A DNA stretch of 64,000 nt from Macrostomum lignano (Eukaryota): NCBI GenBank assembly GCA_002269645.1, contig NIVC01000269.1:620001-684000 (forward strand), in the 5' to 3' direction. Positions 7,821 through 55,563 of this stretch are shown here, piece after piece; the first letter of the stretch is position 1; each line of letters begins with the position of its first letter. The notes beneath the pieces are model-generated. The model was not told the origin of the DNA and made no database searches. It saw nothing but the letters and a program-made list of their open reading frames with translations. Made by a program: the position numbers and the translations under genes.

Positions 7821-10800
7821 TCAACAATCGGCATCGTCAATGACCGGTCCCAATCCTTCAATAGCTCGACTCAATTGGCTAGCGAATTCGTCAGTTTGCG
7901 CTTGAACAGCGACTAGCTGGAGCAATATCCTGTTCAGGGCGGCGCTGCGCTGGGTCTGAACGCCAATGCAACAGCTAGCCGGTGGCGGCGGCGGTGGCTT
8001 CGACAGCCTGTCAACTTCGCTTTGCAAAGCAGCGGCTTCAACCGACAGTTGATCGTAGCGTTGAACTGCGGTCAGCCTGGCTGATTCTGACGCGGCTGCG
8101 CGACCATCTGCCTCCGATAGTCGGGAGTTCGACTCCGCTAGCTTTGTTTCCCTGCGGAGATATTGTCAGGAGAATTTAAGATTATCGAATCAATCGAAAA
8201 AGAGATTTCTAAACTGACTACGACGGATTCAGCTGACATTTCTAAAGCTACTCAAACTGAAGCTGACATTTACAAAGCTACTCAAACTGCAGCTGACATT
8301 TCCAAAGCTACTCAAACTGAAGCTGACATTTCCAAAGCTACTCAAACTGAAGCTGACATTTCCAAAGCTACTCAAACTGTAGCTGACATTTCCAAAGCTA
8401 CTCAAACTGAAGCTGACATTTCCAAAGCTACTCAAACTGTAGCTGACATTTCCAAAGCTACTCAAACTGAAGCTGACATTTCCAAAGCTACTCAAACTGC
8501 AGCTGACATTTCCAAAGCTACTCAAACTGTAGCTGACATTTCCAAAGCTACTCAAACTGAAGCTGACATTTCCAAAGCTACTCAAACTGAAGCTGACATT
8601 TCCAAAGCTACTCAAACTGCAGCTGACATTTTCAAAGCTACTCAAACTGCAGCTGACATTTCCAAAGCTACTCAAACTGCAGCTGACATTTCCAAAGCTA
8701 CTCAAACTGAAGCTGACATTTCCAAAGCTACTCAAACTGCAGCTGACATTTCCAAAGCTACTCAAACTGCAGCTGACATTTCCAAAGCTACTCAAACTGA
8801 AGCTGACATTTCCAAAGCTACTCAAACTGAAGCTGACATTTCCAAAGCTACTCAAACTGCAGCTGACATTTCCAAAGCTACTCAAACTGAAGCTGACATT
8901 TCCAAAGCTACTCAAACTGAAGCTGACATTTCCAAAGCTACTCAAACTGAAGCTGACATTTCCAAAGCTACTCAAACTGTAGCTGACATTTCCAAAGCTA
9001 CTCAAACTGAAGCTGACATTTCCAAAGCTACTCAAACTGCAGCTGACATTTCCAAAGCTACTCAAACTGCAGCTGACATTTCCAAAGCTACTCAAACTGT
9101 AGCTGACATTTCCAAAGCTACTCAAACTGCAGCTGACATTTCCAAAGCTACTCAAACTGCAGCTGACATTTCCAAAGCTACTCAAACTGAAGCTGACATT
9201 TCCAAAGCTACTCAAACTGTAGCTGACATTTCCAAAGCTACTCAAACTGAAGCTGACATTTCCAAAGCTACTCAAACTGAAGCTGACATTTCCAAAGCTA
9301 CTCAAACTGAAGCTGACATTTCCAAAGCTACTCAAACTGAAGCTGACATTTCCAAAGCTACTCAAACTGAAGCTGACATTTCCAAAGCTACTCAAACTGA
9401 AGCTGACATTTCCAAAGCTACTCAAACTGAAGCTGACATTTCCAAAGCTACTCAAACTGAAGCTGACATTTCCAAAGCTACTCAAACTGTAGCTGACATT
9501 TCCAAAGCTACTCAAACTGAAGCTGACATTTCCAAAGCTACTCAAACTGCAGCTGACATTTCCAAAGCTACTCAAACTGAAGCTGACATTTCCAAAGCTA
9601 CTCAAACTGAAGCTGACATTTCCAAAGCTACTCAAACTGTAGCTGACATTTCCAAAGCTACTCAAACTGAAGCTGACATTTCCAAAGCTACTCAAACTGT
9701 AGCTGACATTTCCAAAGCTACTCAAACTGAAGCTGACATTTCCAAAGCTACTCAAACTGCAGCTGACATTTCCAAAGCTATTCAATTTAAAGAGACGCTT
9801 TTTAAAACGCTTCTCAAGCCAGACAGTCACACAGGAGACCAACCTATCAGCCAGTTCGCAATCTCGCACACGACAAGCGGTCTCCAACTCGTTAATCCTA
9901 GTCTCGGCAGCAATCCTAGCTAATTGCTGATTGTCCCTATCCGCTTGCACCTCAGCGAGGCGCTTTCTGATTTCGGCAGCTTCAGCTTCGGCTGACTCCA
10001 ACGCAACAGTTTTTGCTTCGAGTTCCGCAGCGGCCGCGGCTGCCGCAGACTTGGCGGCTGCAAGAGCAGCGGCAGCAGCAGCAGCTGAAGCCTCAGCTTC
10101 GGGATCGTCAATAGCGACCTGAGAGGCCTGTTCAAATAGCACCGGTGCCATAGTCTCAGTTGCCGAGCAAGAGGTAGTGACGGTAGCCTGACTGGCTATC
10201 TCAATTCTTTCAGCTGCAACAATGGGCAACTGCACCGTATTAGTAGAGACCCCTGCTGCTTCGGCAGCTTCAACTCGACGACGCTTCGAGCTGCTGCCGC
10301 TTCCGCCGCCGCCTCGACGTCGACTTTTATTATTACTATTCTTTTTATTCTGGTTACTGCTACCAGAGTTTGCATTGCCTCCATCAGCCGACTTCGACTT
10401 GGAAGATTTTGGCGACTTCTTTGGCGATTTAACTTTTATCTGTTTCGTTGGCAGCTCAGTAGTAACTACTGCTGATGGCGGCGTCAACGGTTGAGCATCC
10501 GTCGAGTCCGTAGCCGGTTGAGTCTCGGAGTTACTCTGCTGATCTACAGACTCCACCTGGGCAATGGTTTGCTGTTGCTGCTCTGGGCAGGCACATTCTT
10601 CAACAGGCGGAGGCGAGATCGACATGGACGAGTCAGCATCGGCGCCGTCCTCATCAGCCGGTGGTTGAGACGGCTGCTGCTCAGAGAGCGGCTGTCGGCT
10701 GTCCTCAGACTGAGCATCGTCAGCTTGAGCGTCGGTCTGATTTGGCGGCGGTTGAATTCGTTTTAGACGTACGGTAACAGGGCCCAAGGTTAGATTGTTG

Positions 10801-13800
10801 GTGGCAATGAGAGCGGCTGATCTGCGAATTCGGTTCTGCTGCTGTTGTAGCAGAAGCTGCTGCTGAGGATTTTCATCTGGCGTGTCCACCGACCAAGCCT
10901 GCTGTTCCGGCTCAGCGGTTGCCGGCTCTGGTGCAGCCGGGGATGACGAGGTGAACTCTGTGCCAGCAGCTGCGTTGGCGGACGTCTCAACAGGCTGAAT
11001 AGGCTTCTCATCAGACAGCTGCTGCTGCTGTTGCTGCTGTTGTTGCTGCTGTTGAACCTCTTGCGTCCAGAGCGACTGCAACTGCAGCGTGTTAATCAGC
11101 CTGTCTGGGCACTACAAATTTCAGCGAATTGTGCAAAAAAAATTTTTAGAACTTGCTTATTTTTTAAAGTTAAACTGCCAGTACTTTTATTGAGTTTACA
11201 AATCTGATAGGGTGACGGATTCCAAAGAAACTGAGGATCTGGGAGTGTTGTGCTTTTGGCTTTAGCCTTAAGCAATTGTCAGTCTAGCGGTCTGTTGACC
11301 TCTGACGCGTCTATTGGCCGTCGTCACTTGGACCGTTGCCACCGGGCTTGGAATCCCCCATTTCCGTAGTTCCGTGAGCCTCAGGTGCATTCAAAGATGC
11401 CATCGGTTCTTGTATGGCCGGAGGTTCACACTGATAACTGATCACCGGCCCCTCACATACATATTCGCGCCAGACAAACAGCTGCCCACCAGAGTTTCAG
11501 CTCGACTACAACGATGGGCAATCATGCTAGCTGCTTATGACTATGTCATACAGTATCGACCATCAAAGCTAATGCTGTCGGATGCGCTATCTCGACTGGT
11601 GCCCGCTAAGCCGAATGCACAGACAGCATCGATCGGACTCCTCGAAGCTGACAACCCGGGAGTAATTCAGCTGGATCGCATTGCACACGCAACCAGAGAG
11701 GACCCGGAGTTCAGATGCCTGGGCGCAGCCATAATTAGCAATAATCTATTTGACGACCCACACCTACTCAGCTACTCGAAAGTTCAAGATGAGCTAACTG
11801 TCAATGATGGAATTATTTACAGAATGAACAGAATTGTATTGCCTCGTGTCCTGAGAGAAACTGCCCTGGCAGCTGTACACTCAACGCACCTTGGGGTGGA
11901 AAAGTCAAAGTCAATTTTGAGGGAACAGTTCTGGTGGCCACAGATGGACCGTGACATCGCTGACTACATTGGACGATGCAACGTGTGCAACGCGTACAAG
12001 TCCAGAAATAAGAACTTTCGGCACTCGTGGCCAGAACCTGACAACCCCTGGGAGCGAGTGCACATTGATTTTGCCGGTCCGATAGAGGGCAAGTACCTAC
12101 TCATCATTGTGGATGCGCACTCGAGCTACCCGGAAGTCTTCATCACGAGCGACATGAAGGCCGACACAGTCATTTCCAGACTTAGAAGATTGTTCTCACA
12201 ACAGGGGGTGCCCAAGTGTCTCGTGTCAGACAACGGCCCTAGTTTTGTGAGCGAAGCGGTGACCGGCTGGCTCACCCAGATTGGCTGTTCGCACATCACA
12301 ACGCCCGCCTACCATCCACAGAGCAACGGCATTGCAGAGCGAATGGTGCGAACCGTCAAAGAGACAATCAAGACCAATGGTTTATCCCAAAGAAGTATTG
12401 ACAGATTTCTACTGTTCTACAGAGCTGCCAAAGGCAAGCAGCAAGCATCACCGTCCGAGTTGTTGAACGGCAGACAAATAAGACTCCCCATCTCGGAGAG
12501 CAGCACTCAGTCCAAGTGGATCCCAGGAGAATCACTCATCTACCGTGCATCGAGTTCTCATGAGCCACGAACTGTGAGATTCGCCAAAATGCTTGGCAGC
12601 AACACAGCAGTCGTCACCACAGAGACTGGACGAAATCTAAAGACCCACCTCGATCAACTACGAATCGGTGAGGTACCTGAGGCTCACGGAACTACGGAAA
12701 TGGGGGATTCCAAGCCCGGTGGCAACGGTCCAAGTGACGACGGCCAATAGACGCGTCAGAGGTCAACAGACCGCTAGACTGACAATTGCTTAAGGCTAAA
12801 GCCAAAAGCACAACAGGGAGGCTGGCCCAGCAACTGAGGATCTGGGAGACTGGCTTAGCAACTGAGGATCTGGGAGGCTGGCCCAGCAACTGAGGATCTG
12901 GGAGGCTGGCCCAGCAACTGAGGATCTGGGAGGCTGGCCCAGCAACTGAGGATCTGGGAGGCTGGCCCAGCAACTGAGGATCTGGGAGGCTGGCCCAGCA
13001 ACTGAGGATCTGGGAGACTGGCCCAGCAACTGAGGATCTGGGAGGCTGGCCCAGCAACTGAGGATCTGGGAGGCTGGCCCAGCAACTGAGGATCTGGGAG
13101 ACTGGCCCAGCAACTGAGGATCTGGGAGGCTGGCCCAGCAACTGAGGATCTGGGAGGCTGGCCCAGCAACTGAGGATCTGGGAGGCTGGCCCAGCAACTG
13201 AGGGTCTGGGAGACTGGCTTAGCAACTGAGGATCTGGGAGGCTGGCCCAGCAACTGAGGATCTGGGAGGCTGGCCCAGAAACTGAGGATCTGGGAGGCTG
13301 GCCCAGCAACTGAGGATCTGGGAGGCTGGCCCAGCAACTGAGGATCTGGGAGACTGGCCCAGCAACTGAGGATCTGGGAGACTGGCCCAGAAACTGAGGA
13401 TCTGGGAGGCTGGTGGCCCAGCAACTGAGGATCTGGGAGACTGGCCCAGCAACTGAGGATCTGGGAGACTGGCCCAGCAACTGAGGATCTGGGAGACTGG
13501 CCCAGAAACTGAGGATCTGGGAGGCTGGTGGCCCAGCAACTGAGGATCTGGGAGACTGGCCCAGCAACTGAGGATCTGGGAGGCTGGCCCAGCAACTGAG
13601 GATCTGGGAGACTGGCCCAGAAACTGAGGATCTGGGAGGCTGGTGGCCCAGCAACTGAGGATCGGGGAGACTGGCCCAGCAACTGAGGATCTGGGAGGCT
13701 GGCCCAGCAACTGAGGATCTGGGAGGCTGGCCCTTCAACTGAGGATCTGGGAGGCTGGCCCAGCAACTGAGGATCTGGGAGGCTGGCCCAGCAACTGAGC

Positions 13801-22028: not shown

Positions 22029-23412
22029 CGAGGGCTGAGTAATAAGTTTCCGGATGTGCATAGTTGAGAGGCGGCTGACAAAATCTGACACCATATAGGT
22101 GTCAAGTACATTTATAAAGTACAATGTTTGTAAAGTTTCAGACAAACTGGTCATATATAGCCAGTGCAGCACCCAAACCAAGCTAGAATACCCACCCTTA
22201 TCTATCGAATTCACAATGGAGCTCAATAGGAGTCATTTTAGAGCAATGATTTATTACGATTTTAAAAGTGGTTTGCGGCAGCAAGAAAGTCTTGAGCGAT
22301 TGCGAGGATTTTTGGGGATGAAGCACCTTCTAGATCCACCGTTTTTGACTAGTTTGCCGAATTTCGACGTGGCAGGCAGAGTCTGGATGATGAGGAGCGC
22401 AGCGGCCAGCCTGTCTCCGCAACGACCGAGGACAGCCTGTCTCCGCAACGACCGAGGACAGCCTGTCTCCGCAACGACCGAGGACAGCCTGTCTCCGCAA
22501 CGACCGAGGATAATGTTGCTGCTGTCCGGGCCATGGTTGAGAATGATGCCCGAGTGACTGTGGCCCAGATAGAGACAGAGGTGGGCATCTCATCAGGATT
22601 CATCAGGACGATCCTATATTCACAGCTCAACCTGAGCAAGATTTCTGCACGCTGGGTGCCTCATCAGCTGGCTCCGGAGCAGGAGGCTCGGGTGACCTGG
22701 TGCCGCACCATGCTCGACAGATTCAACGGAGGCAGCTCAAACTTGGTCTGGGATATCGTCAGTGGTGACGAGTCCTGGATCTATAGTTTCAACCCGGAGA
22801 CTAAGCAGCAGTCGGCCCAGCGGACTCCAGTTAGCGGCACCCCACCATCCAAGCTCGTCGAGATCGCGCAGCGTGGCGAAGCAGATGGTGGCCGTTTTTG
22901 TGGCGAAAACCGGTCATCTGGCCACGCGGTTCCACTCGTGCAGCAGCGCACAGTTACCAGTGACTGGTACGCCAACGTTTGCCTGCCAGAAGTGCTGAGC
23001 GCTCTCTCCAGGCGTCGCCCAAGGACTCGAGCTCGGGGCATCCTTCTCCATCTCAACAACGCCCCGGCCCACAAGGCTCGACAGGTGGCGGAGTTCCTAG
23101 CCGGAGAGCGCATTCAAGAGCTCGGTCATCCACCCTACAGCCCCGACCTGGCCCCCTGCGACTTCTTTGTGCTTCCACAAATCAAGTGCAGGCCATGCGT
23201 GGAATCCGCTATGGATCACCAAAGCTGCGTGGACTGGAGGCCTTCACCCTGCATGTGGAGAAGGTGCCTGCTTCAGATTGGTCCAGCTGCTTCAGCAAGT
23301 GATTTAGGCGCATGAAAATTTGCATCGAATCTGCTGAAGAGTACTTTGAAAAGATGTAACTGTTTTTTTCTCTAACTATTTCTGTCTGGGCACATCCGGA
23401 AACTTATTGTTC
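22029..23412 (+). pseudogene. Degenerate mariner transposon (D,D34D-type transposase with frameshifts) nested in the KDZ element
   Basis: Left end TA|CGAGGGCTGAGTAATAAGTTTCCGGATGTGC and a partial right TIR (CACATCCGGAAACTTATT). Motifs KISARWVPHQL, GDESWIY, (H)NNAPAH and YSPDLAPCDF are split over frames. An internal 26-bp unit is repeated three times at about 22428-22510. Confidence 0.9.
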
Positions 23413-37556: not shown

Positions 37557-39632
37557 CTAAGGTTCGTTGCAAAAGTCATAAGGGAGCAGCGCCTTTTCAT
37601 CACCACTTGCACGTCCACGTCCACCTCCGCGTCCTCGTCCACCTCGGCGTCCACCTCCGCGTCCTCGTCCACCTCGGCGTCCACCTCCGCGTCCTCGTCC
37701 ACCTCGGCGTCCACCTCCGCGTCCTCGTCCACCTCGGCGTCCACGTCCACCTCCACGCCCACATCCGAGTCCACTCGTTGCAGTATCAGGAGCTGGCGCC
37801 TCCGGCAGCATCAGCGGCGCCCACACTTTCATCTCGTGGCATGGGCAGGCTACTGCTGTACCAGGGCACATGCAGGACAGCTGACGGTAAGTGATCGGCC
37901 CACCATCAGTCCTTGAGACGTCGTGCATCGACTTCGAGCCTGGCATGCCGCAGAGGTCCTCACCCACGAAGGTGATGATGCTTGTGAAATAGTTCATGTC
38001 CTCTGGCTGAACCAACCATGTGAGTATGTGCAGAGGGCTACCCGATCTGACGGCTTCCATAACTTCCTGAGGTGTTACAACGTCCTGCCGGCTAGCCACG
38101 ACTTCATCGCAGCGGCGTTTGATAGCCGCTCCAACTCCATCCGCAGCACCCTTGCCGTGTCCGGCCTCTGTGTAGATCCAACGCCAGCTTGACACCCTCA
38201 TGATCTTCATCAGGCGGTCGAATAAGAAAACCATCTTGCGATTTCTATACTGGCTGGATGGCGAATCAGAGACGATGACGATCTGGTCCAGTTGGCTAAA
38301 GGCGTCCTTATCGACATCGTGCTTCTCCTTAAAGTGGCGAAGGACTGGTTGTAGATGAGCGGCGATGGCCTCCGCCGTCTTACTCCTCTCTCCTGATACC
38401 GTTGCGAATGAGCAAGGTTGATGTCCAGCCATGTAGGCCACGCCTTGATGAAGCACCACCTGATCCTTGTCGCCAAAGTGCGCCGCCTGTACCTCTTTGT
38501 GGTACTTCGCCGTATAGTTTTCGGAGAAGTCTATGTGCAACAGGAGCTGTCCCGGCTGCAGAGTATCCTTAACCTGGCGGATTGCACGATACTGGTTCCG
38601 CATCCGCATAAAGTGGCCCGCAAAGTCGACTAGTTGCACCATCAGCATGCTGATAGCCGTCTTGCATGATGCCGTCTCTTTGACCACATCCAAGCCGCTG
38701 CGTCCATCTGTCCGAGGCTTCCAAACGCGGTACACAACCTGTGGCTCAGCCTCAGCTGTCTCCGTGACTACAAATGACTTGCGACGGCACTCGTCGCATT
38801 TGCGCAGCAGGCAGTCAGCGTATTCCATGTCGCAGACCATTTCATTCAACACTTTAGTAATGTGGTGGCTGTGAAGAAGTCCAGCAATGTGCATGCCTTT
38901 GATTAAGGACTCCGTGTTAGTGCACTTTATGCACATACACATGTCTCGGTCACACAGACGAGCCCTCTTGACATACCATGGCTTCCAGCGGTTAAATGTT
39001 GCCCGGCTGATCTTCACACCAGGATACTCCCAAAGGAATTTTGCATGGAGCAGGGAGACTGAGCTCAGGAGATAACGCTTCTGTTTTGTCTCCTTCTCCT
39101 CGCCAAATCTCTTGGAGATGCAATCCTTCCGGGAGGAGGTGGCCCGCGAGTTTTCGTCCTGGCAAAAGTACTCCTGGACGACGCTCACAAGCAGATTTAT
39201 CTTCGGCGCTCTCGGCTGCTTTAAGATCTTCGCGGAGGCGCCAAAGAAGGCCATGACGGCCTTCCGTCCTGCCTCGTGGTCGTTTAGACAGGCAGCCTTG
39301 ATTACTCGCCGGGTGTTATTGAACCGTCTGACTGACTGCAGCGCTCTCTTCACATGGCTAGCTATGTTGGTGAAAGTCTGAAGCCGGCAACTTTTTGCCG
39401 CCAATTCCTTATTCGCGCGATGAAGTTTCACTCGTAGGCAGGTTTTGCTTGTCTTGCGCTGCTTGGCAGCAGTCTCAAGCAGGTGCACCCTGGCCTTTAG
39501 CTTGGCATTCTCCCGCTTGAACGCCGCTGCCGATCTTGCCAAGGATCGCTGGGGGATCTCTGCCGAAGTGCTGGACCCTGCCTTGTCCTTGCGATTGCCT
39601 TTGTCCCTATACTTCTGCTGTTGCCGCCGCAT
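37557..39632 (-). CDS. DDE transposase, CMC superfamily (Chapaev-like), 691 aa, with a C-terminal RGG repeat tail
   Basis: Uninterrupted ORF with C-x-C-x2-C, LHIDFSENY, VSDSPSSQYRN and EAGHGKGAADGVGAAIKR. The family is assigned from memory of these motifs, and no TIRs were identified. Confidence 0.7.
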   Translation of the reverse strand: MRRQQQKYRDKGNRKDKAGSSTSAEIPQRSLARSAAAFKRENAKLKARVHLLETAAKQRKTSKTCLRVKLHRANKELAAKSCRLQTFTNIASHVKRALQSVRRFNNTRRVIKAACLNDHEAGRKAVMAFFGASAKILKQPRAPKINLLVSVVQEYFCQDENSRATSSRKDCISKRFGEEKETKQKRYLLSSVSLLHAKFLWEYPGVKISRATFNRWKPWYVKRARLCDRDMCMCIKCTNTESLIKGMHIAGLLHSHHITKVLNEMVCDMEYADCLLRKCDECRRKSFVVTETAEAEPQVVYRVWKPRTDGRSGLDVVKETASCKTAISMLMVQLVDFAGHFMRMRNQYRAIRQVKDTLQPGQLLLHIDFSENYTAKYHKEVQAAHFGDKDQVVLHQGVAYMAGHQPCSFATVSGERSKTAEAIAAHLQPVLRHFKEKHDVDKDAFSQLDQIVIVSDSPSSQYRNRKMVFLFDRLMKIMRVSSWRWIYTEAGHGKGAADGVGAAIKRRCDEVVASRQDVVTPQEVMEAVRSGSPLHILTWLVQPEDMNYFTSIITFVGEDLCGMPGSKSMHDVSRTDGGPITYRQLSCMCPGTAVACPCHEMKVWAPLMLPEAPAPDTATSGLGCGRGGGRGRRGGRGRGGGRRGGRGRGGGRRGGRGRGGGRRGGRGRGGGRGRASGDEKALLPYDFCNEP
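37618..37750. repeat. 30-bp coding tandem repeat (GGRRGGRGRG) at the 3' end of the transposase
   Basis: About 4 copies of GTCCACCTCCGCGTCCTCGTCCACCTCGGC. Confidence 0.9.
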
Positions 39633-41883: not shown

Positions 41884-42953
41884 TGAAAGAGGAAAATCGC
41901 CGAATTTTGGTATATACTCAACATGATTTTAATAATCTATATTAAATATAAAAAGGGACCTAGCCTACAACTGCATATTAGAATTTTCTAGCCTATAGGC
42001 CTAGCATGCAAGCTATTTGGCATACAAAATCCAATATAATTATAATGGCATATAAACTAGGGGCCTATTTGAAAATTGATGCATGTACTAGTGCTATGCC
42101 TTTATCATAGTATACTCGAATGTTCTTTCAATGTAATAACTGTATATTCGAATCTTTCTTAGAAACTGAATCTACGCGAACGCCAAATAATAGTTTGTTT
42201 TAATGCGCGAAATAAATTGGAGAATTATTTTTTGTTTTAATCGTATGTGGGGAAAATCACTATATATAGGAGCGATTTTATAGCAAATAAACCAACTGTC
42301 TTTTACTCGTGAGCAAATAATTGCGAACAGAATAAGCAGTTCAATCTAAACCATTTCAAAGTCTTTGAGCTAAATAGCGACTTATTTATTTGCAAAACCT
42401 GTGAAACGATTCTAAGAAATTTGCTAAGAGAAGGGAATTGGGACTAATTCTTGGAGATATACCAAGAGAGGCGCCGTGACCCTCTAGTCTCGGTGAACGC
42501 CCGATTAGGACTATACACTAATACATATACCAGTACTAGACCGCTCAGGCCATAAGCTACTAGAACGCTACCAGAAAGCAAGCCATAAGCTACCAGAAAC
42601 GCTACTAAGAACGCTACCAGAAACGCTACTAAGAACGCTACCCAGAAATATTTAAATGAAATTCTAAGAAATAGTTAGGGAGTAAAAGCAAGTATAATCA
42701 GGATAACTGTAGTTGGCAAATCGGTGGGATTAAAATTGATAAAGTAAGAGGTGAAAGGCCTGTAACAACTTTGGTGGCAGCTCGTAGGATATTTAATAAA
42801 CACTAATAGTTAGAAGTTTAGAAAGACAGAGCCAAAAAGGCCTGTCACAGCTGGTGGCAGCGGTGGGATTATTTCAGTGAGAGCGCCCACCCCTACGACA
42901 ACTTGGTGGCAATAGTGGGATATTATTAAGAAGGAAGTAAGCACTGTCACAGC

Positions 42954-42964
42954 TGGTGGCAGCG
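42954..42964 (+). promoter_or_regulatory. Primer-binding site complementary to the tRNA-Leu 3' end
   Basis: TGGTGGCAGCG lies 2 nt after the LTR end and is complementary to the remembered tRNA-Leu end ...CCGCTGCCA-CCA. Confidence 0.8.
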
Positions 42965-43052
42965 ATAAGGATTAGAGAAACGGCGCGAACTCTCAAAACT
43001 AGATTCAGAAGAATTCCGAAGAATAATTTGAAAAGTTTTTCGTAGAGAGAAG

Positions 43053-43846
43053 ATGAATCAGAATCAGGCTAATGACGCCATCGCCATGCTGGCAGAAGAA
43101 TTGCGAAACCGACTAGAGATACGGCCGATGAGACACGTTAAGATTCAGAAATTCACACCTACGCAAGACATTCGGATTTGGCTAACAGCTTTCGATCAGC
43201 GCTGTGAAGTAGAAGGGATAGATGAGGAACATAGGAAGCAGGAATTGCTAGCTAATCTGGACCTGTCCACTGCATTCGCAGCGGTACAGCGCCTAAATCT
43301 GCCCGAGGATCTCGAATACGAAGAGTTCAAAGAGCGACTGATTGAGCGATTCGGAAGAATCGGTAGTTCCGCAGAATTCAGAGAGGAGTTTCGTGGAAGA
43401 ATGCAAGGCAGAAATGAGCCTGTAGAGACTTTCGCAGACTGTTTGATCGAGCTGGCATCGCGTGCATTTCCGAATATGACGGTTGAGCAAAGGGAAGAAG
43501 AAATTGTTGAGCAATTCATCAAGGGAATCAGAATTCCGTCAGAGACCCGTGAGAAGCTAATCTTTGCGCAGCCAGGCAATTTACAAGAGGCTAGAAGAAT
43601 GCTAAGAAGGATGGAGGCTGCGTGGAACATGTCTCACAAGAATGTCAACATGAGAATGGCCAAAGGCGAAGGCGAGAGTGAGCAGAAGGCAGATCAGGAG
43701 AAGCTTGAGGACATCATCAAGAAGCAGAGAGCAGAGTTAGAGCAACAGAAGAAGGCGATTGAGGAGCTGATGGAAGAGAAGAGAGCTAGCCGTCAGCAGT
43801 ATCATCCGCAGAATCAATATCAAACGTACGCTCAGGTCGCTGGACC

Positions 43847-43879
<33 letters not shown>

Positions 43880-44042
43880 AGTATGGCGCGGTCAGCCTCA
43901 GTTCAACAGGCAGCCACAGCAACAACAGCAGCCTCGAGCCTGCTACAATTGCGGGAAGCTTGGCCACATGGCGAGGAATTGCCAGAGCGCTAGGCCAAAC
44001 GGTCAGCGAGTGGTGAACTACCAGAAGCAGCAGGGAAACTGA
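43053..44042 (+). CDS. gag: Gypsy Gag with a CCHC zinc knuckle
   Basis: 329-aa ORF with retrotransposon-gag-like segments (FKERLIERFG, QGRNEPVETF) and CYNCGKLGHMARNC. Confidence 0.9.
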
Positions 44043-44080
44043 GTAGCGAGGGCCGCTTTGCGAGGCCACGTCCCTCTAGC
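44033..44080 (+). promoter_or_regulatory. -1 programmed ribosomal frameshift site between gag and pol
   Basis: Slippery heptamer G GGA AAC (44033-44039) immediately before the gag stop. The -1 frame is open through to the protease, and a downstream GAGGG...CCCTC / GGCC...GGCC stem is possible. Confidence 0.8.
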
Positions 44081-46117
44081 AACAATTATCGCGAATTTCA
44101 GGCCTCTGAATTTGTAAATAATGCGTATCGAAGTAATGCCAGACAGTATAGTAACAGCAGAACGCATGCCGAATTCAATAAATTTCACAGAAAACCAAAT
44201 AAAAATTTTGCACCTCGTGTACATACGCCGCTTGCACCTAGTCATGCGTCTGCCAGCCACAGTAGGCCGAATAATAAAGTACAAAGTACAGTAATTCCGA
44301 ATGAGCATTCGAAGAAAGAATTCGAAGAAGATACGGAGAGAAAAGGACGAGAAGCAGTCGTCAATGGAATGCTAAGAAACCGAAAGGTCTACTTCCTGCT
44401 AGACACAGGAGCTGGACATAATTTCCTAAGCAAGAGTACTTGGAAAAAGATGTTCAGAAGTGATGAAATTGAGTTGACTACTCGAAGAGTGACTACGTTT
44501 GACGGATCAAGTGTGCGAATTGAAGGAGAAGTCAGAACGAAAATACGATTCGGAGAGATAGAGATTGAGACAGAGTTCCTGCTGTGCAATCACGAGTGTG
44601 ACGACATACTCGGGATGGAGTTCTTCATGAACTTCTGCGACAGCATCAGCCTTTCCAGAGGAATGCTTGTATTAAAAGAAGGAACCTGCATCCCAATTCA
44701 GTTTACAAAATTACCCGTACGGGTTTGCCGAATCTACAGCCATAACAGCGTGACTATACCAGCGAATAGCGCTCTTCGAATTCCAATTAGAATGACTAAA
44801 GGATCAGAAGCTAACTATGGAACGCCAATGGTCATTGACACCATTGGAGGCCAAGTGACTACGAAGAGAAATTCCTTAGAGATGATTCCTACTCTAGTGA
44901 CCATGAACGATGGAACAGGAGTAGTGGAAATAATCAATCGACAGAATGACGATATCAGACTGACAAGATCTACGCTGATTGGAGTGGCCAAACCCTTGAA
45001 GCCAGGAGGCCTGGCCTACTCTATTAACAGCAAAGGTCAAGCCAGTTCAGATGATGCAATTAGGACAGTGAAGAGTGAAGAGAGTGAGTACAGCTGGATA
45101 AACGAGATCGATTTAGGAGAAGAGCTAACATCAGAACAGAAAGGACTAGTGATCGATTTGCTAAAGAAGAACAAGGAAGCATTTTCGCAGACCAACCAAG
45201 ACATGGGTCTCACCCATCTTGTGACTCATGAAATATCTCTAAAAGATACCACACCGGTCAGGATTCCAACACGCAGAATTCCACCACATCTGCAAAAGCA
45301 AGTAGATGAGCAACTTGACGACATGCTTGCTAAGAACCTGATCCGACCATGCTATAGTACTTATTCAACGCCGCTAGTGATAGTTCCTAAGAAGGATGGA
45401 TCCATAAGAATCGTCAGTGACTTCAGGGTCCTGAACTCGAGAGTGAACTATTACCCATATCCATTGCCGAACATACAAGAGACTTTCGCTCAGTTATCTG
45501 GAAGCAAGTACTTCAGTAGTCTAGATTTAAACTCTGGATACTGGCAGGTACCTATCAAAGAAGAGCACAAATTTATGACAGCCTTTTCCACCCTTACCAG
45601 AGGCCAGTTCGAATATCAGGTCATGGCACAGGGCTTGTCTAACGCTCCTGGTACATTCCAGAGACTCATGAATTTGGTGCTGATGGGAATACAGCACAAA
45701 TTCGCGATGTCGTACATAGATGATATTGTGACATACTCAGAGAAATTCGAAGATCATCTCGGTCATCTGCAAGAAGTATTTCAAAGACTAATCTCAGCAG
45801 GACTAAAATTAAGACCAAAAAAGTGCAACTTGTTTCAGAAAGAGCTAAAGTACTTAGGGCATATCGTAGGAAGAGAAGGGATTAGAACAGACCCAGCTAA
45901 GATCGAAGCGATACAGTCATGGCCTACGCCGAAAGAGGTCAAAGAACTGCGAAGCTTCTTGGGGTTGTGTAACTACTACTGCAGATTTGTAAAGAATTAC
46001 GCAGAGGCAGCAGCATCAGTCAGTACCAAGACCTCGCCGCCTGAACAGATTCAGTGGAATCAGGCCAGAGCCGAAACCTGGTCACTGCTTCTTCTGCAAC
46101 CAGCCAGGACCCATTAG
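44033..46117 (+). CDS. pol: Truncated Gypsy Pol (aspartic protease plus reverse transcriptase)
   Basis: FLLDTGA (protease), YFSSLDLNSGYWQ and SYIDDI (RT), KELRSFLGLCNYY. Similarity ends near 46010, before RNase H. Confidence 0.9.
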   Translation, partial: GKLSSEGRFARPRPSSNNYREFQASEFVNNAYRSNARQYSNSRTHAEFNKFHRKPNKNFAPRVHTPLAPSHASASHSRPNNKVQSTVIPNEHSKKEFEEDTERKGREAVVNGMLRNRKVYFLLDTGAGHNFLSKSTWKKMFRSDEIELTTRRVTTFDGSSVRIEGEVRTKIRFGEIEIETEFLLCNHECDDILGMEFFMNFCDSISLSRGMLVLKEGTCIPIQFTKLPVRVCRIYSHNSVTIPANSALRIPIRMTKGSEANYGTPMVIDTIGGQVTTKRNSLEMIPTLVTMNDGTGVVEIINRQNDDIRLTRSTLIGVAKPLKPGGLAYSINSKGQASSDDAIRTVKSEESEYSWINEIDLGEELTSEQKGLVIDLLKKNKEAFSQTNQDMGLTHLVTHEISLKDTTPVRIPTRRIPPHLQKQVDEQLDDMLAKNLIRPCYSTYSTPLVIVPKKDGSIRIVSDFRVLNSRVNYYPYPLPNIQETFAQLSGSKYFSSLDLNSGYWQVPIKEEHKFMTAFSTLTRGQFEYQVMAQGLSNAPGTFQRLMNLVLMGIQHKFAMSYIDDIVTYSEKFEDHLGHLQEVFQRLISAGLKLRPKKCNLFQKELKYLGHIVGREGIRTDPAKIEAIQSWPTPKEVKELRSFLGLCNYYCRFVKNYAEAAASVSTKTSPPEQIQWNQARAETWSLLLLQPARTH

Positions 46118-46977
46118 GCCTCAGGCAGGACACCAGTGCCGAATCAACTTCAACCGGCACGCCCAGCAGAAGCCACCCTAAGAAGACTCGTACACAGGAG
46201 CGCGAATCTGAAAGCTATTTGTAAATATGTTTCAAATATGCAAAAAATATAAAAACGAATAAAAAAAAAATTCAGAAAACCCAAAAAAATATTTGTTTAA
46301 GAAGTATTTCGTCTGCATACTGCAATGTACTGACCAAGTAAGCCGTCTAAAGGTCGTTAAATAGCTAAAAATTTAGGAGGTAACCCTTAAAAGGGCCGTT
46401 TGACCTTAAAAGGGCCGTTTTACTAAGAAACTTATTTAGGAAAGCCAGGGAACTGCAATTTCGGACTGAAAACATTGAAGGAAGATTATTTTACTCAGAG
46501 AAGTTGACGAGAAGTTGATGCTGAGAGAATTGTGCAGAATTGTGCGAAGAGAATTGTCGAAAAGATTGGATTGCAGAGATTGGCATGACGCACGGACAGC
46601 TACGCATGCTGACCAATTGCGGATTGGCCAAAGGCAGAAAGAAGAGGCCGATGACGCTTTCAGAAGAGCCAAAAAAGGTTCAGAGAGTCAGGCCATGCAG
46701 GAAAGGAAGGGCAGTAAGGCCTAAAGAGCAGATTAATACAGAATTTCTATGATTCTACTGACGAGGCCAAACTGAGATAGCGGAAGGGGATTCGAGATTT
46801 GAGAATTTGTTAAGAGTTGTAGGACCCGTGACAGTAGAGCTGTAGCTGGCATGAGTTCAGCAGAGAAGCTTTCGAGAGGTCAGGGTCGAGTCGAGATATT
46901 GAGTCGAGAAGTTGTTGAGTTGAGATGAGATGGAATGAAGATGAGATTTCGAGGAGAAGCTGTGAGAATTTGCAAAG

Positions 46978-47466
46978 TTGTTCGAAGAGAAACATAGAAA
47001 TAATCTGACTCCAGTACCGAAATCCGAAATTAATTTACCAGAGGAAATTAATAATAATTTAAAACCAGCACCAGTGTCAACTAAGAAGAAGGAACCGCCG
47101 AAGTCGAATAAAAGAATTTGCCATAGACAAAAAGAAGTTAGAATTCCAGAAGTTCAAATTTTAGAGGAGGAAAGCTCAGACGAAGAAAACAGAATTCAAT
47201 GGAGAGTATTCGCAGATCCGAATTCGCAGAGTGAAAACGAAGGAAATGAAGAATTGAACAGTGAGAATACAGAGAGAGCGACTGACTCAGATGAGCCATC
47301 AGAAGAAGAGGAAGGAGCATTAGAGTTAGAGGAGGAACGTGCTAACACAGTAGGAGGCTATAATTTGAGACCCCGAGACAATAGAGTGACTCAGCAAGAG
47401 AGAGAGAGAGAAGGCGCGACAGGATTTGTGCCCCGAAGGCGCTACGCGAAATATTTAGCACCTTAA
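46978..47466 (+). pseudogene. Acidic remnant resembling a Gypsy pol C-terminal tail
   Basis: E-rich segment ending in GGYNLRPR, a motif typical of Gypsy integrase tails. Confidence 0.45.
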
Positions 47467-47866
47467 ATCATGACGTAAGCAATTTCCCATAAGAAACAGT
47501 GTTAAATAGTTAAAATTCCGTATTAGAATTACTTATCTGCTTATAAAATTTGACATGCTGTACATAGAGCGAATCTGTAAATACCATATTAATCTACAAA
47601 ATGCGATCTTTAATTTGATACTTTACTCAAGAAAATCTATCAAAAAATAAAAAAGTTATAAAAAGAAATAGAAAATCCATAAAAATTTAGTTGTCAAATC
47701 TGTCAAATCTGGCATGCCCCGCCCCACGCGCGAGGGGAGTGCTTCGAAGAGGTCCAGTTTTTCGGCCCGCCAGCCTATAAATACGAGCACCCCGCAGGCC
47801 CCACAGATCCCATAGCTCACTGCTAGCTTCCTTTCTATTCTAAGAGCCATTCGCAAAGAAATCAAA

Positions 47867-48751
47867 ATGAACAACTCTATTGATATCTTGGACGAGTTAA
47901 TTGGCAATCTGTCAGACGATATGGAGCCCCAGCCAGCGCCCAACACCGATGAAAATGAGGCACCGCTTCGATGTGCAACACGTCCAAAGGCGCCTGGTGT
48001 ATCCAGCAAACGGCCAAGAACATCATCGCCAGCTTCATCGCCTTGCCGCCAAATGAGGGTCGAAGGCCCCGAGCAGAAGCGCGCCGCCCTGGTGGCAGCA
48101 CAGGCAGCTGCGCCCGAGCGCTCCTATGTTGTCAAGGCCACGCCAGGATCGTCGACATCAAGCCGAACGCAGCAGTTGGTGTCACCGCCAGCTGCCCCAT
48201 CATCGAGAAAGACCCCGGCACCACGGCAGAAGAAATCGACAGCTGCGACACCGCCAGCTCAGCAGCCAGCGTCGCAGCCGAGCCTGCAATCAGCGCAGCA
48301 GTCAGCGCTGCAGCCGAGCCTGCAATCAGCGCAGCAGTCTAGCCAGCCATCAGCACTACAGCCGAGCCAGCAGCAATCGAATTCGCAGAGAGATTTTCAT
48401 CGCATCGTCCGAGAACTTGTGGAGACTCGCGGAGCAGAGGTGGAAAAGCTACGCTTCCACATTGAGCAATACGCACTGAAAGTAGCGTACCACCGATCCG
48501 ACAGCCGACAGCGCTACCCCCAATGCTCGCAAATTTGGACACACCTGAAGTTTCTGAGGGATCAATTCAGTTACCAGGAAGCTGTCGCTGTTCTCCAGGA
48601 CGTCGCCTATCGCCTCCAGCGAGCTATAAGAGCCAACCCGCCGCCAGCGCTGACGGTCCTCGACGAAGAGTACCGATGGTTTTTTCGCTCAAGTCGGCTG
48701 GCCCTACTATCGCGACCTCCCGGAGCCCTGCATGTTTATCTGAACTATTGA
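47867..48751 (+). CDS. Extra 294-aa ORF of unknown function in the 3' internal region of the Gypsy element
   Basis: ATG-initiated and intact, with a disordered S/P/Q-rich N-half and a helical-looking C-half. TATAAATA at about 47775 and a GC box lie upstream. Confidence 0.6.
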   Translation: MNNSIDILDELIGNLSDDMEPQPAPNTDENEAPLRCATRPKAPGVSSKRPRTSSPASSPCRQMRVEGPEQKRAALVAAQAAAPERSYVVKATPGSSTSSRTQQLVSPPAAPSSRKTPAPRQKKSTAATPPAQQPASQPSLQSAQQSALQPSLQSAQQSSQPSALQPSQQQSNSQRDFHRIVRELVETRGAEVEKLRFHIEQYALKVAYHRSDSRQRYPQCSQIWTHLKFLRDQFSYQEAVAVLQDVAYRLQRAIRANPPPALTVLDEEYRWFFRSSRLALLSRPPGALHVYLNY

Positions 48752-50030
48752 GGTGAACTAACTTTTGCGTTGCCTTTAATAACAATTTTGCCTTTTATAA
48801 TACTTTTATAATAGTTCGTTTTGCTTCCATAATAGTTCTCACTTTAATGGTTTACCTACATAATAGTTCTATCACAACCATTTTATGCACCAATTGTTTT
48901 AGCACTGAATTGTGTTTTCTGCACCTTGCTTTGCACCTTTTCACCTGCATTTTCCTACGATATCAATTTTTCACTGTATACATATAATATAGTATTTCGT
49001 TCAAAATTTGATATATAGAGGAGGAAAGTTGTACTAGTGCTATGCCTTTATCATAGTATACTCGAATGTTCTTTCAATGTAATAACTGTATATTCGAATC
49101 TTTCTTAGAAACTGAATCTACGCGAACGCCAAATAATAGTTTGTTTTAATGCGCGAAATAAATTGGAGAATTATTTTTTGTTTTAATCGTATGTGGGGAA
49201 AATCACTATATATAGGAGCGATTTTATAGCAAATAAACCAACTGTCTTTTACTCGTGAGCAAATAATTGCGAACAGAATAAGCAGTTCAATCTAAACCAT
49301 TTCAAAGTCTTTGAGCTAAATAGCGACTTATTTATTTGCAAAACCTGTGAAACGATTCTAAGAAATTTGCTAAGAGAAGGGAATTGGGACTAATTCTTGG
49401 AGATATACCAAGAGAGGCGCCGTGACCCTCTAGTCTCGGTGAACGCCCGATTAGGACTATACACTAATACATATACCAGTACTAGACCGCTCAGGCCATA
49501 AGCTACTAGAACGCTACCAGAAAGCAAGCCATAAGCTACCAGAAACGCTACTAAGAACGCTACCAGAAACGCTACTAAGAACGCTACCCAGAAATATTTA
49601 AATGAAATTCTAAGAAATAGTTAGGGAGTAAAAGCAAGTATAATCAGGATAACTGTAGTTGGCAAATCGGTGGGATTAAAATTGATAAAGTAAGAGGTGA
49701 AAGGCCTGTAACAACTTTGGTGGCAGCTCGTAGGATATTTAATAAACACTAATAGTTAGAAGTTTAGAAAGACAGAGCCAAAAAGGCCTGTCACAGCTGG
49801 TGGCAGCGGTGGGATTATTTCAGTGAGAGCGCCCACCCCTACGACAACTTGGTGGCAATAGTGGGATATTATTAAGAAGGAAGTAAGCACTGTCACATGC
49901 AAGCATATTCCAGTTTTTAGAACAAAATTATAATATTTCTGAGATTACAATACAATTAACAAGTGAAAGTAAGTACCAACCAACAATTAACAACATCTAG
50001 CTTAAAATTTAGCTTTAGTATAACTATAGA

Positions 50031-51909: not shown

Positions 51910-52825
51910 AATGATAGGAGGAAAGCTTCTTTTGTTGCTGGTAAGAGTGCTGCTGGTGCTGCTGGTAGGAGTGCTGCAGGTGCTGCTGGTGTTGCAGGGA
52001 GGAGTGCTGCCGGTGTTGCTGGGAGGAGTGCTGCTTCTGTTGCTGGGAGGAGTGCTGCTTCTGTTGCTGCGAGGAGTGCTGCTGGTGTTGTTGTTGTTGT
52101 TGGTTGTTGTTGTTGGCGTTGCCGTACCACAGCCCTACTCTCTCTTCAGTCTAACCCGTTCTCGGAACTCGTTCCAAAGGGCCCGGTGCTGGTGTTGCTG
52201 GGAGGAGTGCTGCTTCTGTTGCTGGGAGGAGTGCTGCTTCTGTTGCTGCGAGGAGTGCTGCTGGTGCTGCTGGTGTTGCTGGTGTTGCTTTGAGGGGTGC
52301 TGCTGGTGTTGCTTTGAGGGGTGCTGCTGGTGTTGCTTTGAGGGGTGCTGCTTCTGTTGCTGGGAGGAGTGCTGCTGGTGTTGCTGCGAGGGGTGCTGCT
52401 TCTGTTACTGCGAGGAGTGCTGCTGGTGCTGCTGGTGTTGCTGGTGTTGCCTGTGTTGCTGGGAGGAGTGCTGTCGGTGCTGCTGGTGCTGCTAGGAGGG
52501 CTGGTGCTGGGAGTGATGATGTTGGGAGTGATGATGCTGGGAGTGATGATGTTGGGAGTGATGATGCTGGGAGTGATGATGCTGGGAGTGATGATGTTGG
52601 GAGTGATGATGCTGGGAGTGATGCTGCTGGGAGTGATGATGTTGGGAGTGATGCTGTTGGGAGTGATGATGTTGGGAGTGATGCTGCTGGGAGTGATGAT
52701 GCTGGGAGTGATGCTGCTGGGAGTGATGATGTTGGGAGTGATGCTGCTGGGAGTGATGATGCTGGGAGTGATGATGTTGGGAGTGATGCTGGTCGGAGTG
52801 ATGATGCGGAGAGCAGTGATGCTGT
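51910..52825. repeat. GC-rich low-complexity repeats (GGAGGAGTGCTGCT... units and 15-bp GGGAGTGATGATGCT units encoding GSDDA/GSDDV)
   Basis: Directly visible. The 15-bp array is in frame with the downstream transposase. Confidence 0.9.
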
Positions 52826-55563
52826 GAAGCAATTTCATAATTCGAATTTTATTATTAAGTTGTCTTTTGATAGGTGGCAAAAAAATATGAAAATTAGGCA
52901 GAGTCAGAAGAATCATGCTGCACTCACGCGGAGTGCAGCATCATGGTGGCTGGATACGTTGAGGGAAAACTATCGAAGCTATTGCTCTGCTAGTGAACAG
53001 GGAAGTAATTGTGTGTTGAAATTCAAAATATTTTTTAAAACAAGTCGCTTTTTGTCAGCACGCTGGTTGCGAGATCGTTCACGATTTCAGAATTTCCAAC
53101 GTACTCACCTCAAATCAGCCAGTGCAGAGGTAGTGGTACATAGCAGGGGCAGAAAATGTCACCAAAAAGCAACGATTTCGAGAATGACCCCTGCGGAGGC
53201 GCAAAAGATAACGAAGCTGCTTGAAGCCGATGCACCAACAGAGGTTCACGATAGGCTTCTTTCCGAAATGTCTAAGAGAGACAGAGACGAGTACAACTTC
53301 TCAAGAGCAAAGAATTTAGATGCCATTCGGCGCGTCAATGCAAAGCGTATTGTTTCTGCTGAAGATCGTCTCCACAATAATGTTGAAGTCGAACCCTCTG
53401 TGCAGCAGCAAATTTTGCACGATACAGATGTGGAGAGTAAGTACGTGCTAGGCTACATTCAAGCCACATCACGTCACCCTTATCACCTTCATTTGTATCT
53501 GGAAAAGCAACTTGAATTAATAGTCAACAGGACTCAGTGTGTATTGCATCTTGACGCGACTGGCGGCATTTTCAAAAAGATCCAGCGCCTAGGCAAAAAG
53601 ATGATGCTGTACTCCCTAGTACTTCCCTCCGCCAACCAGGAAACACGCAGTGTACCAGTGGCTGAGATGGTTACAAGCGATCATAAAACAAAATCAATTC
53701 AACATTTCCTATTCTCTGTGCGAGCTGATTTAGGAGCACTCGCTTCCGGCACACTGATGTCATACGAGTTTATGTCGGCTGTAATTGTCACCGAATTTTC
53801 ATGGGCGATGTTGCATTCAGTTTGTCGGTAATTTGGAAACAGCTTAGAGGAATACCTGGTCGATTCATCCGAGGCAGTTCACAGTGGGAGGTCCATATCG
53901 TACACGATTCCGTTTATTTGCACTAATCATGCAATTCATGCATTTGCCCGAGGCATCAAAGCAAAAGGAACTGTCGACAAAGCCGTTCGAGAACTTTTTA
54001 TAAATTCATTCGTTCTGCTTATTCACCAGGAAACTTTTGAGGCGTTTGAGTTCACATTGAATATCGTAACAGAAACATTCCTAGGGCAGCGCCATCCTCG
54101 GGACTTAATAAATCAAATCAATCAATGGGAAACGACTCACACCACAACCGATGAAAACATTTTGCTAGACATTAACGAAAAAGTAAAAAACCCTAAACCT
54201 TATGACGATAAATCACATGCTATTCGAATTAAATCGCTCCGAGAAAACTCGCCATTCTTTAGCCTGTTTCTGGCAAGGCAGAAAATAATTGACAGCACTG
54301 AGCCTTCTAACACTTCTAAAATATTATTCTCCGCAGCTGCTGATTTACCTTCTAAAAAACTGGTGCAGCCTGGCGCCTCTCTTTTGTCATTTTATAGCTG
54401 CTCTAAAAAGATTTGAGAAGAAAAAGAGCTGGTTTTCAAATTCATACGTTGAATCATACTTTGCCGACGTGAAATCACGCATATCAAAGAGAGGAAAGAG
54501 AGTGCGCACGACATGTTTTGTTGAAATGCAGTTGAAGTACTTGAAAGCTCGCATATCTGCATTCAATATATTTAACAAGTGTGGAAAAGCTACATTGTCA
54601 GGACGAAAGAGAAAGCGTGAGGACATTTCATCATGCTAGGAGGAGTGGAAAAAACGTGAATAAAATACGCGCTCGAAATATAAACGGCAGAAAACAAGTC
54701 AAAGAGCCCACCGTACCAACCCAATGACATCTGGTCCATCAGGCACGCACGACCAAGAGCACTCAGAGGTTTGGTACACTCGGGCGGGAGACTTCCTGAG
54801 CAGGTACGACAAAGATTCTTTAGCACCAGGGCAGTGGCTGTCCATCGGCATCGTGAATGCTTTTATCCATCTTCTCTGCGTTAGCAACCCGGATCGTGAA
54901 GTTGGTCACTTGCCGTCCAGTTTCTTCAACTGCATCCGAAACGTAGATTCGAATGATGCACTGAGGATGCTACAGAACTCTGTTTCAACCGGTTGCAAGC
55001 GCCTACTGAGTCCCATTTTAGAAAACGACCACTTTCACTTAGTCTATATTGATTTGAGCACAAAGCAACTTGCAGTCTTAGACACAAGGCCAATTAGGAA
55101 CAGCAACATAACAAATCGATACATTGAGCTTTGGCACAGGTTCATCAACACGGCCCAAGTAAAGATGTGCGTTCCGAGTGTTCAAGGAAAATATAGGAAT
55201 AAATCGATGCTAAGATCCATTCAAGCAGATGGCTACAACTGTGGAGTCTTTGTGTGCTTGTACGCAAAAGTATTGATCACATCTAACGATAATGAATTCA
55301 GGTCTTTGTGCTTTCCAACTTCGAGGCAATTTTTTAACAAAGCAAGAACCCATATTTGGGAATATTTAGAAGGCACAGCCTATTCGAATAATGGAAACGC
55401 AAACTCGTGCATACTCTGCAACGAAGCAGAAGCTAGAGAGAGTGGTACATGGCTACAATGCGACCTCTGTGACTCATGGATACACATTGAATGCGCCTCT
55501 CCAGAGATGCTCCAGCGCCACAGCGCTCATGGCTATGTGTGCTGCTGCGTGCCATACAACTAA
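52290..55563 (+). pseudogene. NOF-FB/MULE-like transposase fused to a Ulp1-like cysteine protease and a PHD finger; disrupted
   Basis: LHLDATGG, VPVAEMVTSDH, IVTEFSWA and ICTNH (transposase core); WLS..IVNAF, HFHLVYID and QADGYNCGVFVC (Ulp1-like H/D/Q/C); CILC...WLQCDLCDSWIHIEC (PHD). Stops occur at 53829, 54637 and 54661, with a frameshift near 54350. Confidence 0.7.

Follow-up and report, generated by a model that had tools for sequence, protein, structure and literature searches.

A 1,570-bp element carrying a Gypsy-type integrase gene between two exact inverted arms was identified at positions 11246-12815 of a 64,000-nt stretch of the Macrostomum lignano genome (assembly GCA_002269645.1, contig NIVC01000269.1, positions 620,001 to 684,000, forward strand), which was analyzed as a whole and is called the window here. 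We consider the element to be a one-off defective insertion of a Ty3/Gypsy-type long terminal repeat (LTR) retrotransposon that derived from a faulty reverse-transcription product, and assign this reading a probability of about 0.6. Structurally, it would be a new and unusual variant among defective LTR-retrotransposon insertions, in which the U5-side end was duplicated in inverted orientation and the product inserted by integrase. We infer for this a template switch, an integrase supplied in trans and a single-event history of the element.

Inverted arms, target site and integrase gene

A repeat search of the window detected one inverted-repeat pair at the element, 11246-11386 and 12675-12815, whose members are 141 nt each, 100% complementary and spaced by 1288 nt. 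No other repeat was found at the element, and no direct repeats flank its open reading frame (ORF). The termini read TGTTGTG... on the left and ...CACAACA on the right. The complementarity of the arms halts precisely at these TG/CA nucleotides, and the flanking DNA is not complementary. A 37-nt end probe matched the 64-kb window twice, both matches being the element arms, against a chance expectation of 0. The right arm (12675-12815, + strand), the native 3' end, comprises 24 integrase-tail codons (12676-12747), a TAG stop codon (12748-12750) and the only 65 nt, all non-coding, that remain before the element ends in ...AAAAGCACAACA. The left arm (11246-11386, - strand), with TGTTGTG at its outer end, is 100% complementary to it and is read as an inverted copy of these 3'-terminal 141 nt.

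The whole inserted element (1.57 kb) lies between two unstranded copies of GGGAG. The left copy (11241-11245) forms the last 5 nt of a first, partial minisatellite unit (11226-11245), and the right copy (12816-12820) was recognized by reading the sequence. Tandem-repeat analysis showed that the host DNA is a 28-bp minisatellite of ~35 units (12816-13799, unstranded), the insertion being located in its first unit. Excising the element together with one GGGAG in silico gave AGAAACTGAGGATCTGGGAG|GCTGGCCC, a normal unit of this array; in a longer view the restored empty site reads ...ACTGAGGATCTGGGAG|GCTGGCCC..., again an ordinary minisatellite unit. The repeat search and the site restoration thus bear out the initial annotation, which had described exact inverted 141-bp ends, TGTTGTG and CACAACA, and a GGGAG duplicated from the 28-bp unit. 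In an array of 28-bp units, a duplication of 5 bp and a target deletion of 23 bp formally look alike, and the chance of finding GGGAG on the right flank is therefore ~1/28 and not 1/1024.

Since the inverted repeat ends exactly at the nucleotides of the integrase attachment (att) site and is bracketed by the target duplication, the inverted ends must pre-date integration. The anatomy of the element fits the earlier proposal of an att end that was first copied in inverted orientation and then integrated. An assembly artefact, or a chromosomal fold-back rearrangement that followed an ordinary insertion, could also account for perfect inverted repeats, as chimeric long reads and replication template switching can both yield them, and the apparent target-site duplication (TSD) has its 1/28 chance of arising within the array. 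However, arbitrary boundaries and no att end beside a duplicated target would then be expected, whereas the repeat ends exactly at the terminal TG/CA nucleotides on both sides and the flanks rebuild an intact minisatellite unit. We therefore regard an artefact or a fold-back as having little probability.

Between and partly within the arms runs a single unbroken ORF of 478 codons (11314-12750), the first ATG of which is at 11524. The longest ATG-initiated frame (11524-12750, + strand, 408 codons) would, if translated, give a near-native integrase with ~25 extra N-terminal residues. Upstream of the integrase and in frame with it, a C-terminal stub of RNase H with the RNase H-integrase connector was recognized on the + strand at 11387-11601 (IQRCHRFLYGRRFTLITDHRPL ... 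LQRWA ... SDALSRLV; Pfam RT_RNaseH positions 59-105 of 105, E=2e-9). It is followed, also on the + strand, by the HHCC zinc-binding domain of the integrase at 11842-12006 (H189, H192, C222 and C225; PF17921, Integrase_H2C2, E=2e-15) and by the catalytic core at 12046-12318 (D252 at 12067 and D306 at 12229; PF00665, rve, E=8e-14). The third catalytic residue, E342 at 12337, is located slightly past the Pfam rve match. No Pfam match to a reverse transcriptase (RT), OTU or Ulp1 domain was obtained in the element ORF. The ORF map, Pfam and the repeat search agree in this respect with the initial annotation, which had recorded one unbroken ORF with an ATG at 11524 and neither RT nor LTRs.

In a six-sequence alignment with five relatives, all seven residues (H189, H192, C222, C225, D252, D306 and E342) were invariant. 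All five relatives possess a further C-terminal stretch of ~35-75 residues ending in RRSxRLxxKPRxxY, which the element lacks. Judged by its residues, the integrase is thus catalytically complete, yet C-terminally truncated, and of the earlier description as a full HHCC+DDE integrase the HHCC and DDE part holds while the word full does not.

The relatives were collected by a search of 5.8 billion proteins, which returned 1,930 matches; the best 120 of the 1,930 were listed. All 120 listed matches have integrase domains, most also have RNase H or RT domains, and many of them are labelled 'K02A2.6-like'. The top protein match among those listed was a Logan contig protein with 61% identity, and two proteins of M. 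lignano itself were among the matches listed with 52% and 47% identity. The closest relatives are pol proteins of short-LTR Gypsy elements with 47-63% identity, collinear with the element over the RNase H-integrase region. They include BOX15_Mlig004066g4 (L008) and BOX15_Mlig014775g1 (L002) of M. lignano and the proteins of Logan contigs L001, L005 and L007. The contig of the closest relative, L001 (63% identity to the element), encodes gag, protease, RT and RNase H, followed by integrase, a polypurine tract (PPT), an LTR of ~156-159 bp and a site resembling a primer-binding site (PBS). Because the RNase H stub is in frame with the integrase, the nearest relatives are pol proteins and the L001 layout is that of an LTR element, the ORF is a cut piece of LTR-retrotransposon pol and not an established Ginger transposase. 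The same had been proposed initially.

Native arm, junction and the LTR ends of relatives

The two arms differ in their relation to the integrase gene. The 24 codons within the right arm encode PEAHGTTEMGDSKPGGNGPSDDGQ, a peptide with zero stops and with zero L, I, V, F, W, Y or C. When these 72 nt were shuffled, a peptide so free of stops and hydrophobic residues came up in just 0.063% of cases. The integrase tails of the relatives are likewise disordered, with 4-14% hydrophobic residues. The element reads GEVPE where its closest relative has GEVPQ. Since the right arm carries on the integrase ORF with a tail-like composition, it is the original extension of this gene, and the left arm accordingly the inverted copy.

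Consequently, the sole true junction is at 11383-11387, in the middle of RNase H. Homology in the alignment opens abruptly at CIQRCHRFLYG..TDHRPL, that is, at the inner edge of the left arm. At this position the closest relative reads gta TGG TGC ata cag (V-W-C-I-Q) and the element AGG TGC att caa, the arm ending in ...CAGGT. A 3-nt microhomology, GGT (11384-11386, + strand), is therefore probable at the junction, and would be present if the parent kept the conserved tryptophan codon. With this microhomology, the RNase H region of the parent would read TGGTGCATTCAA.

A breakpoint in the same part of pol was observed in the M. lignano relative L002 (NIVC01000010.1, protein P0002). At 10001-11833 of that locus an internal deletion has fused the protease (DTGA...GYTDS) to an RNase H stub at HRFLFG..TDHRPL, only ~4 codons away from the breakpoint of the window element. 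This proximity may point to a site in pol where breaks or template switches recur. The LTR region of the same locus (11897-12972) consists of tandem 336-bp units, 100% identical, that are interleaved with 21-bp minisatellites, an unusual LTR array.

An 8-bp palindrome, AGGTACCT (12671-12678, unstranded), has its midpoint precisely where the right arm begins on the inner side. Owing to it, AGGT precedes the pol fragment (11383-11386) and also the right arm. No model of insertion accounts for this palindrome, and it may be a coincidence (about 1/256).

The symmetry of the element could instead reflect two steps, in which a 282-bp palindromic mini-element composed of a pair of inverted att-end modules was inserted first, later broke in the middle and took up a fragment of retrotransposon cDNA by microhomology-mediated end joining. 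The centre of a perfect palindrome is prone to breakage, and breaks are known to capture cDNA. The pol fragment lies exactly at the symmetry centre, and with AGGTACCT, which this history would explain, lying across the right inner boundary, both inner junctions show AGGT. Such a history requires two rare events instead of one, and the captured fragment must have ended in frame exactly at the module start, as the right arm extends the integrase frame with tail-like composition (p about 6e-4). We therefore consider the two-step history improbable.

The LTR ends could be read in four relatives. The LTR of L008 is 192 bp long, starts with TGTTGGG and ends with GTCATAACA; that of L007 measures 249 bp (TGTTGCG to AAAAGACATAACA), that of L002 267 bp (TGTTGTG to TAAAGACACAACA) and that of L001 about 159 bp (TGCTGCG to CATATAACA). 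L008 is an intact M. lignano element with TGTTGGG...CATAACA ends and AAGTG on both sides, a 5-bp TSD. Because its ends and TSD match in type, the TGTTGTG...AAAAGCACAACA ends and the 5-bp TSD of the window element are the product expected of the integrase of this Gypsy family. This agrees with the earlier statement that TG...CA ends with such a TSD are the signature of LTR-element integrases. The final AAAAGCACAACA of the right arm resembles the U5 ends of the relatives' LTRs. When its outer 16 nt were scored against the relatives, U5 ends reached 4.5-8.0 and U3 starts 3.0-6.5, slightly nearer to U5, which is consistent with the right arm being downstream of the integrase. The element ends may thus correspond to U5.

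Other LTR landmarks were sought in the same region. A purine tract followed by TG was found nowhere in the element; the sole PPT-like run, 12696-12707, precedes TTCC. ARAGORN and reading of the sequence revealed no tRNA-like or convincing PBS sequence in the element. The PBS readings TGGCAACGG (+ strand) and TGGCCGTCG (left arm) were dropped, the implied tRNA 3' ends being non-canonical and ARAGORN returning none. A PBS-like sequence, gTGGCGT(C/A)GCA, is common to L001, L007 and L008 after the 5' LTR, and there too the implied tRNA 3' end is non-canonical (no C61). In the four relatives a GGCCATAGAC motif is located 10-75 nt inside the LTR start; its possible counterpart in the element, GGCCAATAGAC (12742-12752, + strand), has p = 0.03-0.09 and is suggestive only. 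Nucleotide homology of the right arm to the relatives' LTRs or to the L001 integrase tail was at most suggestive and otherwise not significant (p = 0.03-0.7), and gave no position for an LTR start within the arm.

Proposed origin and its alternatives

In the origin we favour, faulty reverse transcription, minus-strand cDNA would begin normally at the tRNA/PBS end, and its 5' end would thus bear the U5 att sequence. It would then copy the RNA from its 3' end, across the integrase and as far as the RNase H region. At ~11384-11387 the growing 3' end (...GCACC) would leave the RNA and pair over ~3 nt (ACC on GGT) with a minus-strand DNA at a point 141 nt short of the 5' end of that DNA; this new template could be the same molecule or the minus strand of the co-packaged genome. 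The switched strand would copy this 141-nt stretch to its very end. Completion of the second strand, either through two minus strands extending on each other or through renewed priming on a PBS copied from the tRNA, would result in a 1,570-bp linear DNA with the same ...CACAACA-3' att end twice. Finally, the integrase of an active element of the same family would join both ends to the chromosome, generating the 5-bp duplication. The integrase would have been supplied in trans because the fragment had no means of packaging or expression beforehand. A source without PPT would block normal plus-strand synthesis, which may favour aberrant duplexes. For Ty1 integrase, TG...CA ends suffice for a fragment to be inserted with a 5-bp TSD (PMC2939329), and minus-strand strong-stop DNA is well known to prime aberrantly (PMC4668388).

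Two other routes through LTR-retrotransposon intermediates were rejected. In one, the arm would be minus-strand strong-stop DNA (R-U5) joined by two aberrant transfers; this was discarded since the opening 72 nt of the right arm have the appearance of genuine integrase-tail coding sequence. The appeal of the strong-stop reading is that both junctions would lie at the same module position. In the other, an autointegration 'inversion circle', pol should be joined to the U3 start of a complete inverted LTR and a PPT should precede the right LTR, yet no PPT followed by TG was found along or close to the inner arm edges.

Several observations weigh against an origin by faulty reverse transcription. 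The 3' end is odd for a clean single event, as a conserved integrase tail, a canonical PPT and a recognizable LTR start are all absent; either the parent was already deleted between integrase tail and LTR, or it was unusually compact. The assignment of the element ends to U5 is weak, and two routes of second-strand completion are conceivable. The criterion behind the shuffle frequency of 0.063% was picked after the peptide had been seen, and a 3-nt microhomology is expected by chance in 1 of 64 cases. No parent element was found in the searched collections, and the native sequence across the junction is reconstructed from relatives of 47-63% identity. Finally, the one copy seen comes from a view limited to the 64-kb window.

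The window contains no other fragments of the element, as judged by blastn and tblastn. The wider searches carry no weight on this question. They yielded no second copy or parent, with at best 61% identity among the protein matches listed, 0 exact matches of the terminal inverted repeat (TIR) in metagenome contigs, and only relatives of 24-28% identity in protein-guided scans of viral and metagenome contigs. As a control, the RT of another retrotransposon in the window (42084-49897) was used as query, and its best matches in the protein collection had 30-50% identity. By this control, the searched collections do not contain the host genome, and empty searches for copies or a parent therefore say nothing on copy number.

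The control element itself is a very young LTR retrotransposon with 868-bp LTRs that are 100% identical (TGTACTAG...GTCACA), a 4-bp TSD (TGCA) and the PPT AGAGGAGGAAAG. As its LTRs are identical, retrotransposition must have been recent in this genome. It encodes a gag with a zinc knuckle (43053-44042) and a protease-RT (44369-46117). Neither RNase H nor integrase homology could be recognized in it, and two ORFs (46978-47466 and 47867-48751) occupy the expected place. It is possibly non-autonomous and reliant on an integrase in trans.

The element of the present study could alternatively be a nascent and possibly autonomous TIR DNA transposon, a 'proto-Ginger' whose encoded integrase mobilizes it as DNA. 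Its ORF is intact with invariant HHCC and DDE residues, the ATG at 11524 is near the natural N-terminus of the integrase, and the 141-bp arms, TGTNR-type termini and short TSD are within the Ginger range. In addition, the att sequence used by this integrase family is present at both ends. However, an intact ORF and perfect arms are expected equally of any recent dead insertion, the conserved C-terminal tail of the integrase is absent and no promoter is evident. The arm overlaps 25 codons of the ORF, which resembles a mechanical duplication and not an evolved TIR, and one copy is present in the window with none further retrievable. To our knowledge, retroviral-type integrases nick 3' ends and do not excise integrated DNA. 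Mobilization by the encoded integrase is therefore unlikely. That the element is a just-born, self-contained integrase/TIR unit, in which faulty reverse transcription placed a catalytically intact Gypsy integrase gene between inverted copies of its own att end, is unlikely as well.

The initial annotation had gone further and suggested the conversion of a retrotransposon into a DNA transposon. The pol origin and the duplication of the att end in that proposal are retained. The status of a DNA transposon is shown by nothing, and a dead-end faulty cDNA inserted in trans would explain the structure fully. Having no 5' LTR, PBS, gag, protease, RT or usable PPT, the element cannot retrotranspose, and its movement as DNA is supported by nothing in this analysis.

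Comparison with known systems and significance

With Ty3/Gypsy elements the window element shares the order of RNase H and integrase, the Gypsy-type HHCC and DDE domains, the TG...CA termini and a TSD within 4-6 bp (5 bp in this family). Direct LTRs, a PBS after a 5' LTR and a PPT right before a TG-starting 3' LTR are not present. The likeness to the short-LTR Ty3/Gypsy elements of flatworms extends to the collinear RNase H-integrase region, the TGTTG...(C/T)AACA-type termini, the 5-bp TSD of L008 and the HHCC/DDE residues. The element differs from them by having no direct LTRs, PBS, gag, protease, RT or N-terminal half of RNase H. It also has no canonical PPT and no RRSxRLxxKPRxxY tail, and its ends are inverted copies of one end.

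In Ginger1 and Ginger2/TDD, TIRs of ~40-300 bp that have TGTNR termini enclose the gene of an integrase-type DDE protein, and the TSD is short (Bao, Kapitonov and Jurka 2010, PMC2836005). Ginger1 has TIRs of ~40-270 bp, a 4-bp TSD of CCGG or CCGT and a C-terminal OTU or Ulp1 domain, the latter with or without PHD; metazoan Ginger2 duplicates 4 bp in RTATAY targets, while TDD-4 and TDD-5 make 5-bp TSDs (PMC2836005). The element is similar to Ginger in layout and, if mobile, would work like Ginger. Membership in one of these established groups of integrase-type DNA transposons (Ginger1, Ginger2/TDD or GingerRoot) would fit the TIR length and the TGTNR ends, and the TSD length would fit TDD-4 and TDD-5.

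The remaining features argue against this. The 141-bp arms and TGTTG ends are shared with Ginger1, but the 5-bp GGGAG is neither CCGG nor CCGT and the ORF has no OTU or Ulp1 domain. In comparison with Ginger2/TDD, the target is the G-rich GGGAG in a GC-rich minisatellite and not RTATAY, the TSD length alone matching TDD-4 and TDD-5. Ginger1 and Ginger2 are multi-copy families with no RNase H remnant, whereas the element has an RNase H stub in frame upstream of its integrase and is known from one copy. Furthermore, all 120 relatives among the matches listed have pol-type domains, and the closest lies in a gag-protease-RT-RNase H-integrase element with an LTR. GingerRoot elements have 6-bp TSDs, mostly TA...TA termini and sizes of 3.9-12.9 kb, compared with 5 bp, TG...CA and 1.57 kb here. 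It is thus very improbable that the element belongs to any of these groups. Polinton/Maverick elements, with a 6-bp TSD, AG...TC termini and a protein-primed DNA polymerase, are also different; the element has other termini, another TSD and a single ORF without polymerase.

Artificial mini-donors, such as mini-Ty1 and retroviral donors used in vitro, carry the same LTR end on both sides, and the element works like such a donor. As with the insertion of TG...CA-ended fragments by Ty1 integrase, proper terminal nucleotides at both ends of a linear DNA suffice for insertion by an LTR-element integrase with the TSD of the family (PMC2939329). Those artificial donors are laboratory substrates, whereas the element would have arisen naturally, from faulty reverse transcription, and includes the gene for the integrase. 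5'-inverted LINE-1 copies arise by twin priming. They share with the element a truncated retroelement copy with an inverted segment and aberrant priming or template switching in reverse transcription. Unlike in the element, their inversion takes place at the target during target-primed reverse transcription, with no att-end duplication and no integrase. Such 5'-inverted L1 copies are mentioned in one report (PMC2912911).

Mobile elements are abundant in the window. An ORF at 54724-55563 encodes Ulp1 (Peptidase_C48) and PHD domains, accessory domains described for Ginger1 and some Mutator transposases. Upstream of it, the ORF at 52290-53831 contains an 'LHLDATGG' motif and has no Pfam match and no integrase domain. 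No TIRs were found around 52290-55563. This region is probably another DNA transposon, unrelated to the integrase element. The ORF at 22533-23315 has a weak, sub-threshold match to DDE_3 (Tc1/mariner-type). On the - strand, 37557-39632 contains an ATG-initiated ORF of 691 aa with a C-terminal GGRGR repeat and no Pfam domain, possibly a transposon protein. At 8229-11081 (- strand), 9000-9785 and 12816-13799, long minisatellites with 30-bp and 28-bp units and CAG/CTG runs hold several frames open for hundreds of codons; these frames match pentapeptide and decapeptide repeat families weakly.

The relation of Ginger, TDD and GingerRoot to LTR retrotransposons is open, and the direction of descent is debated (PMC2836005, PMC6839031). 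If the element is a single dead copy, it would be a curiosity that parallels, among LTR elements, the 5'-inverted LINE-1 copies, its chief use being to document the forms that aberrant cDNA can take. Even then, it would indicate that a single reverse-transcription error can give a TIR-flanked integrase gene and would provide proof that such DNA integrates in vivo. The route from retrotransposon to DNA transposon would thereby become mechanistically plausible and testable. If the element were expressed and mobilized, it would be a natural snapshot of the birth of a Ginger-like DNA transposon from LTR retrotransposons.

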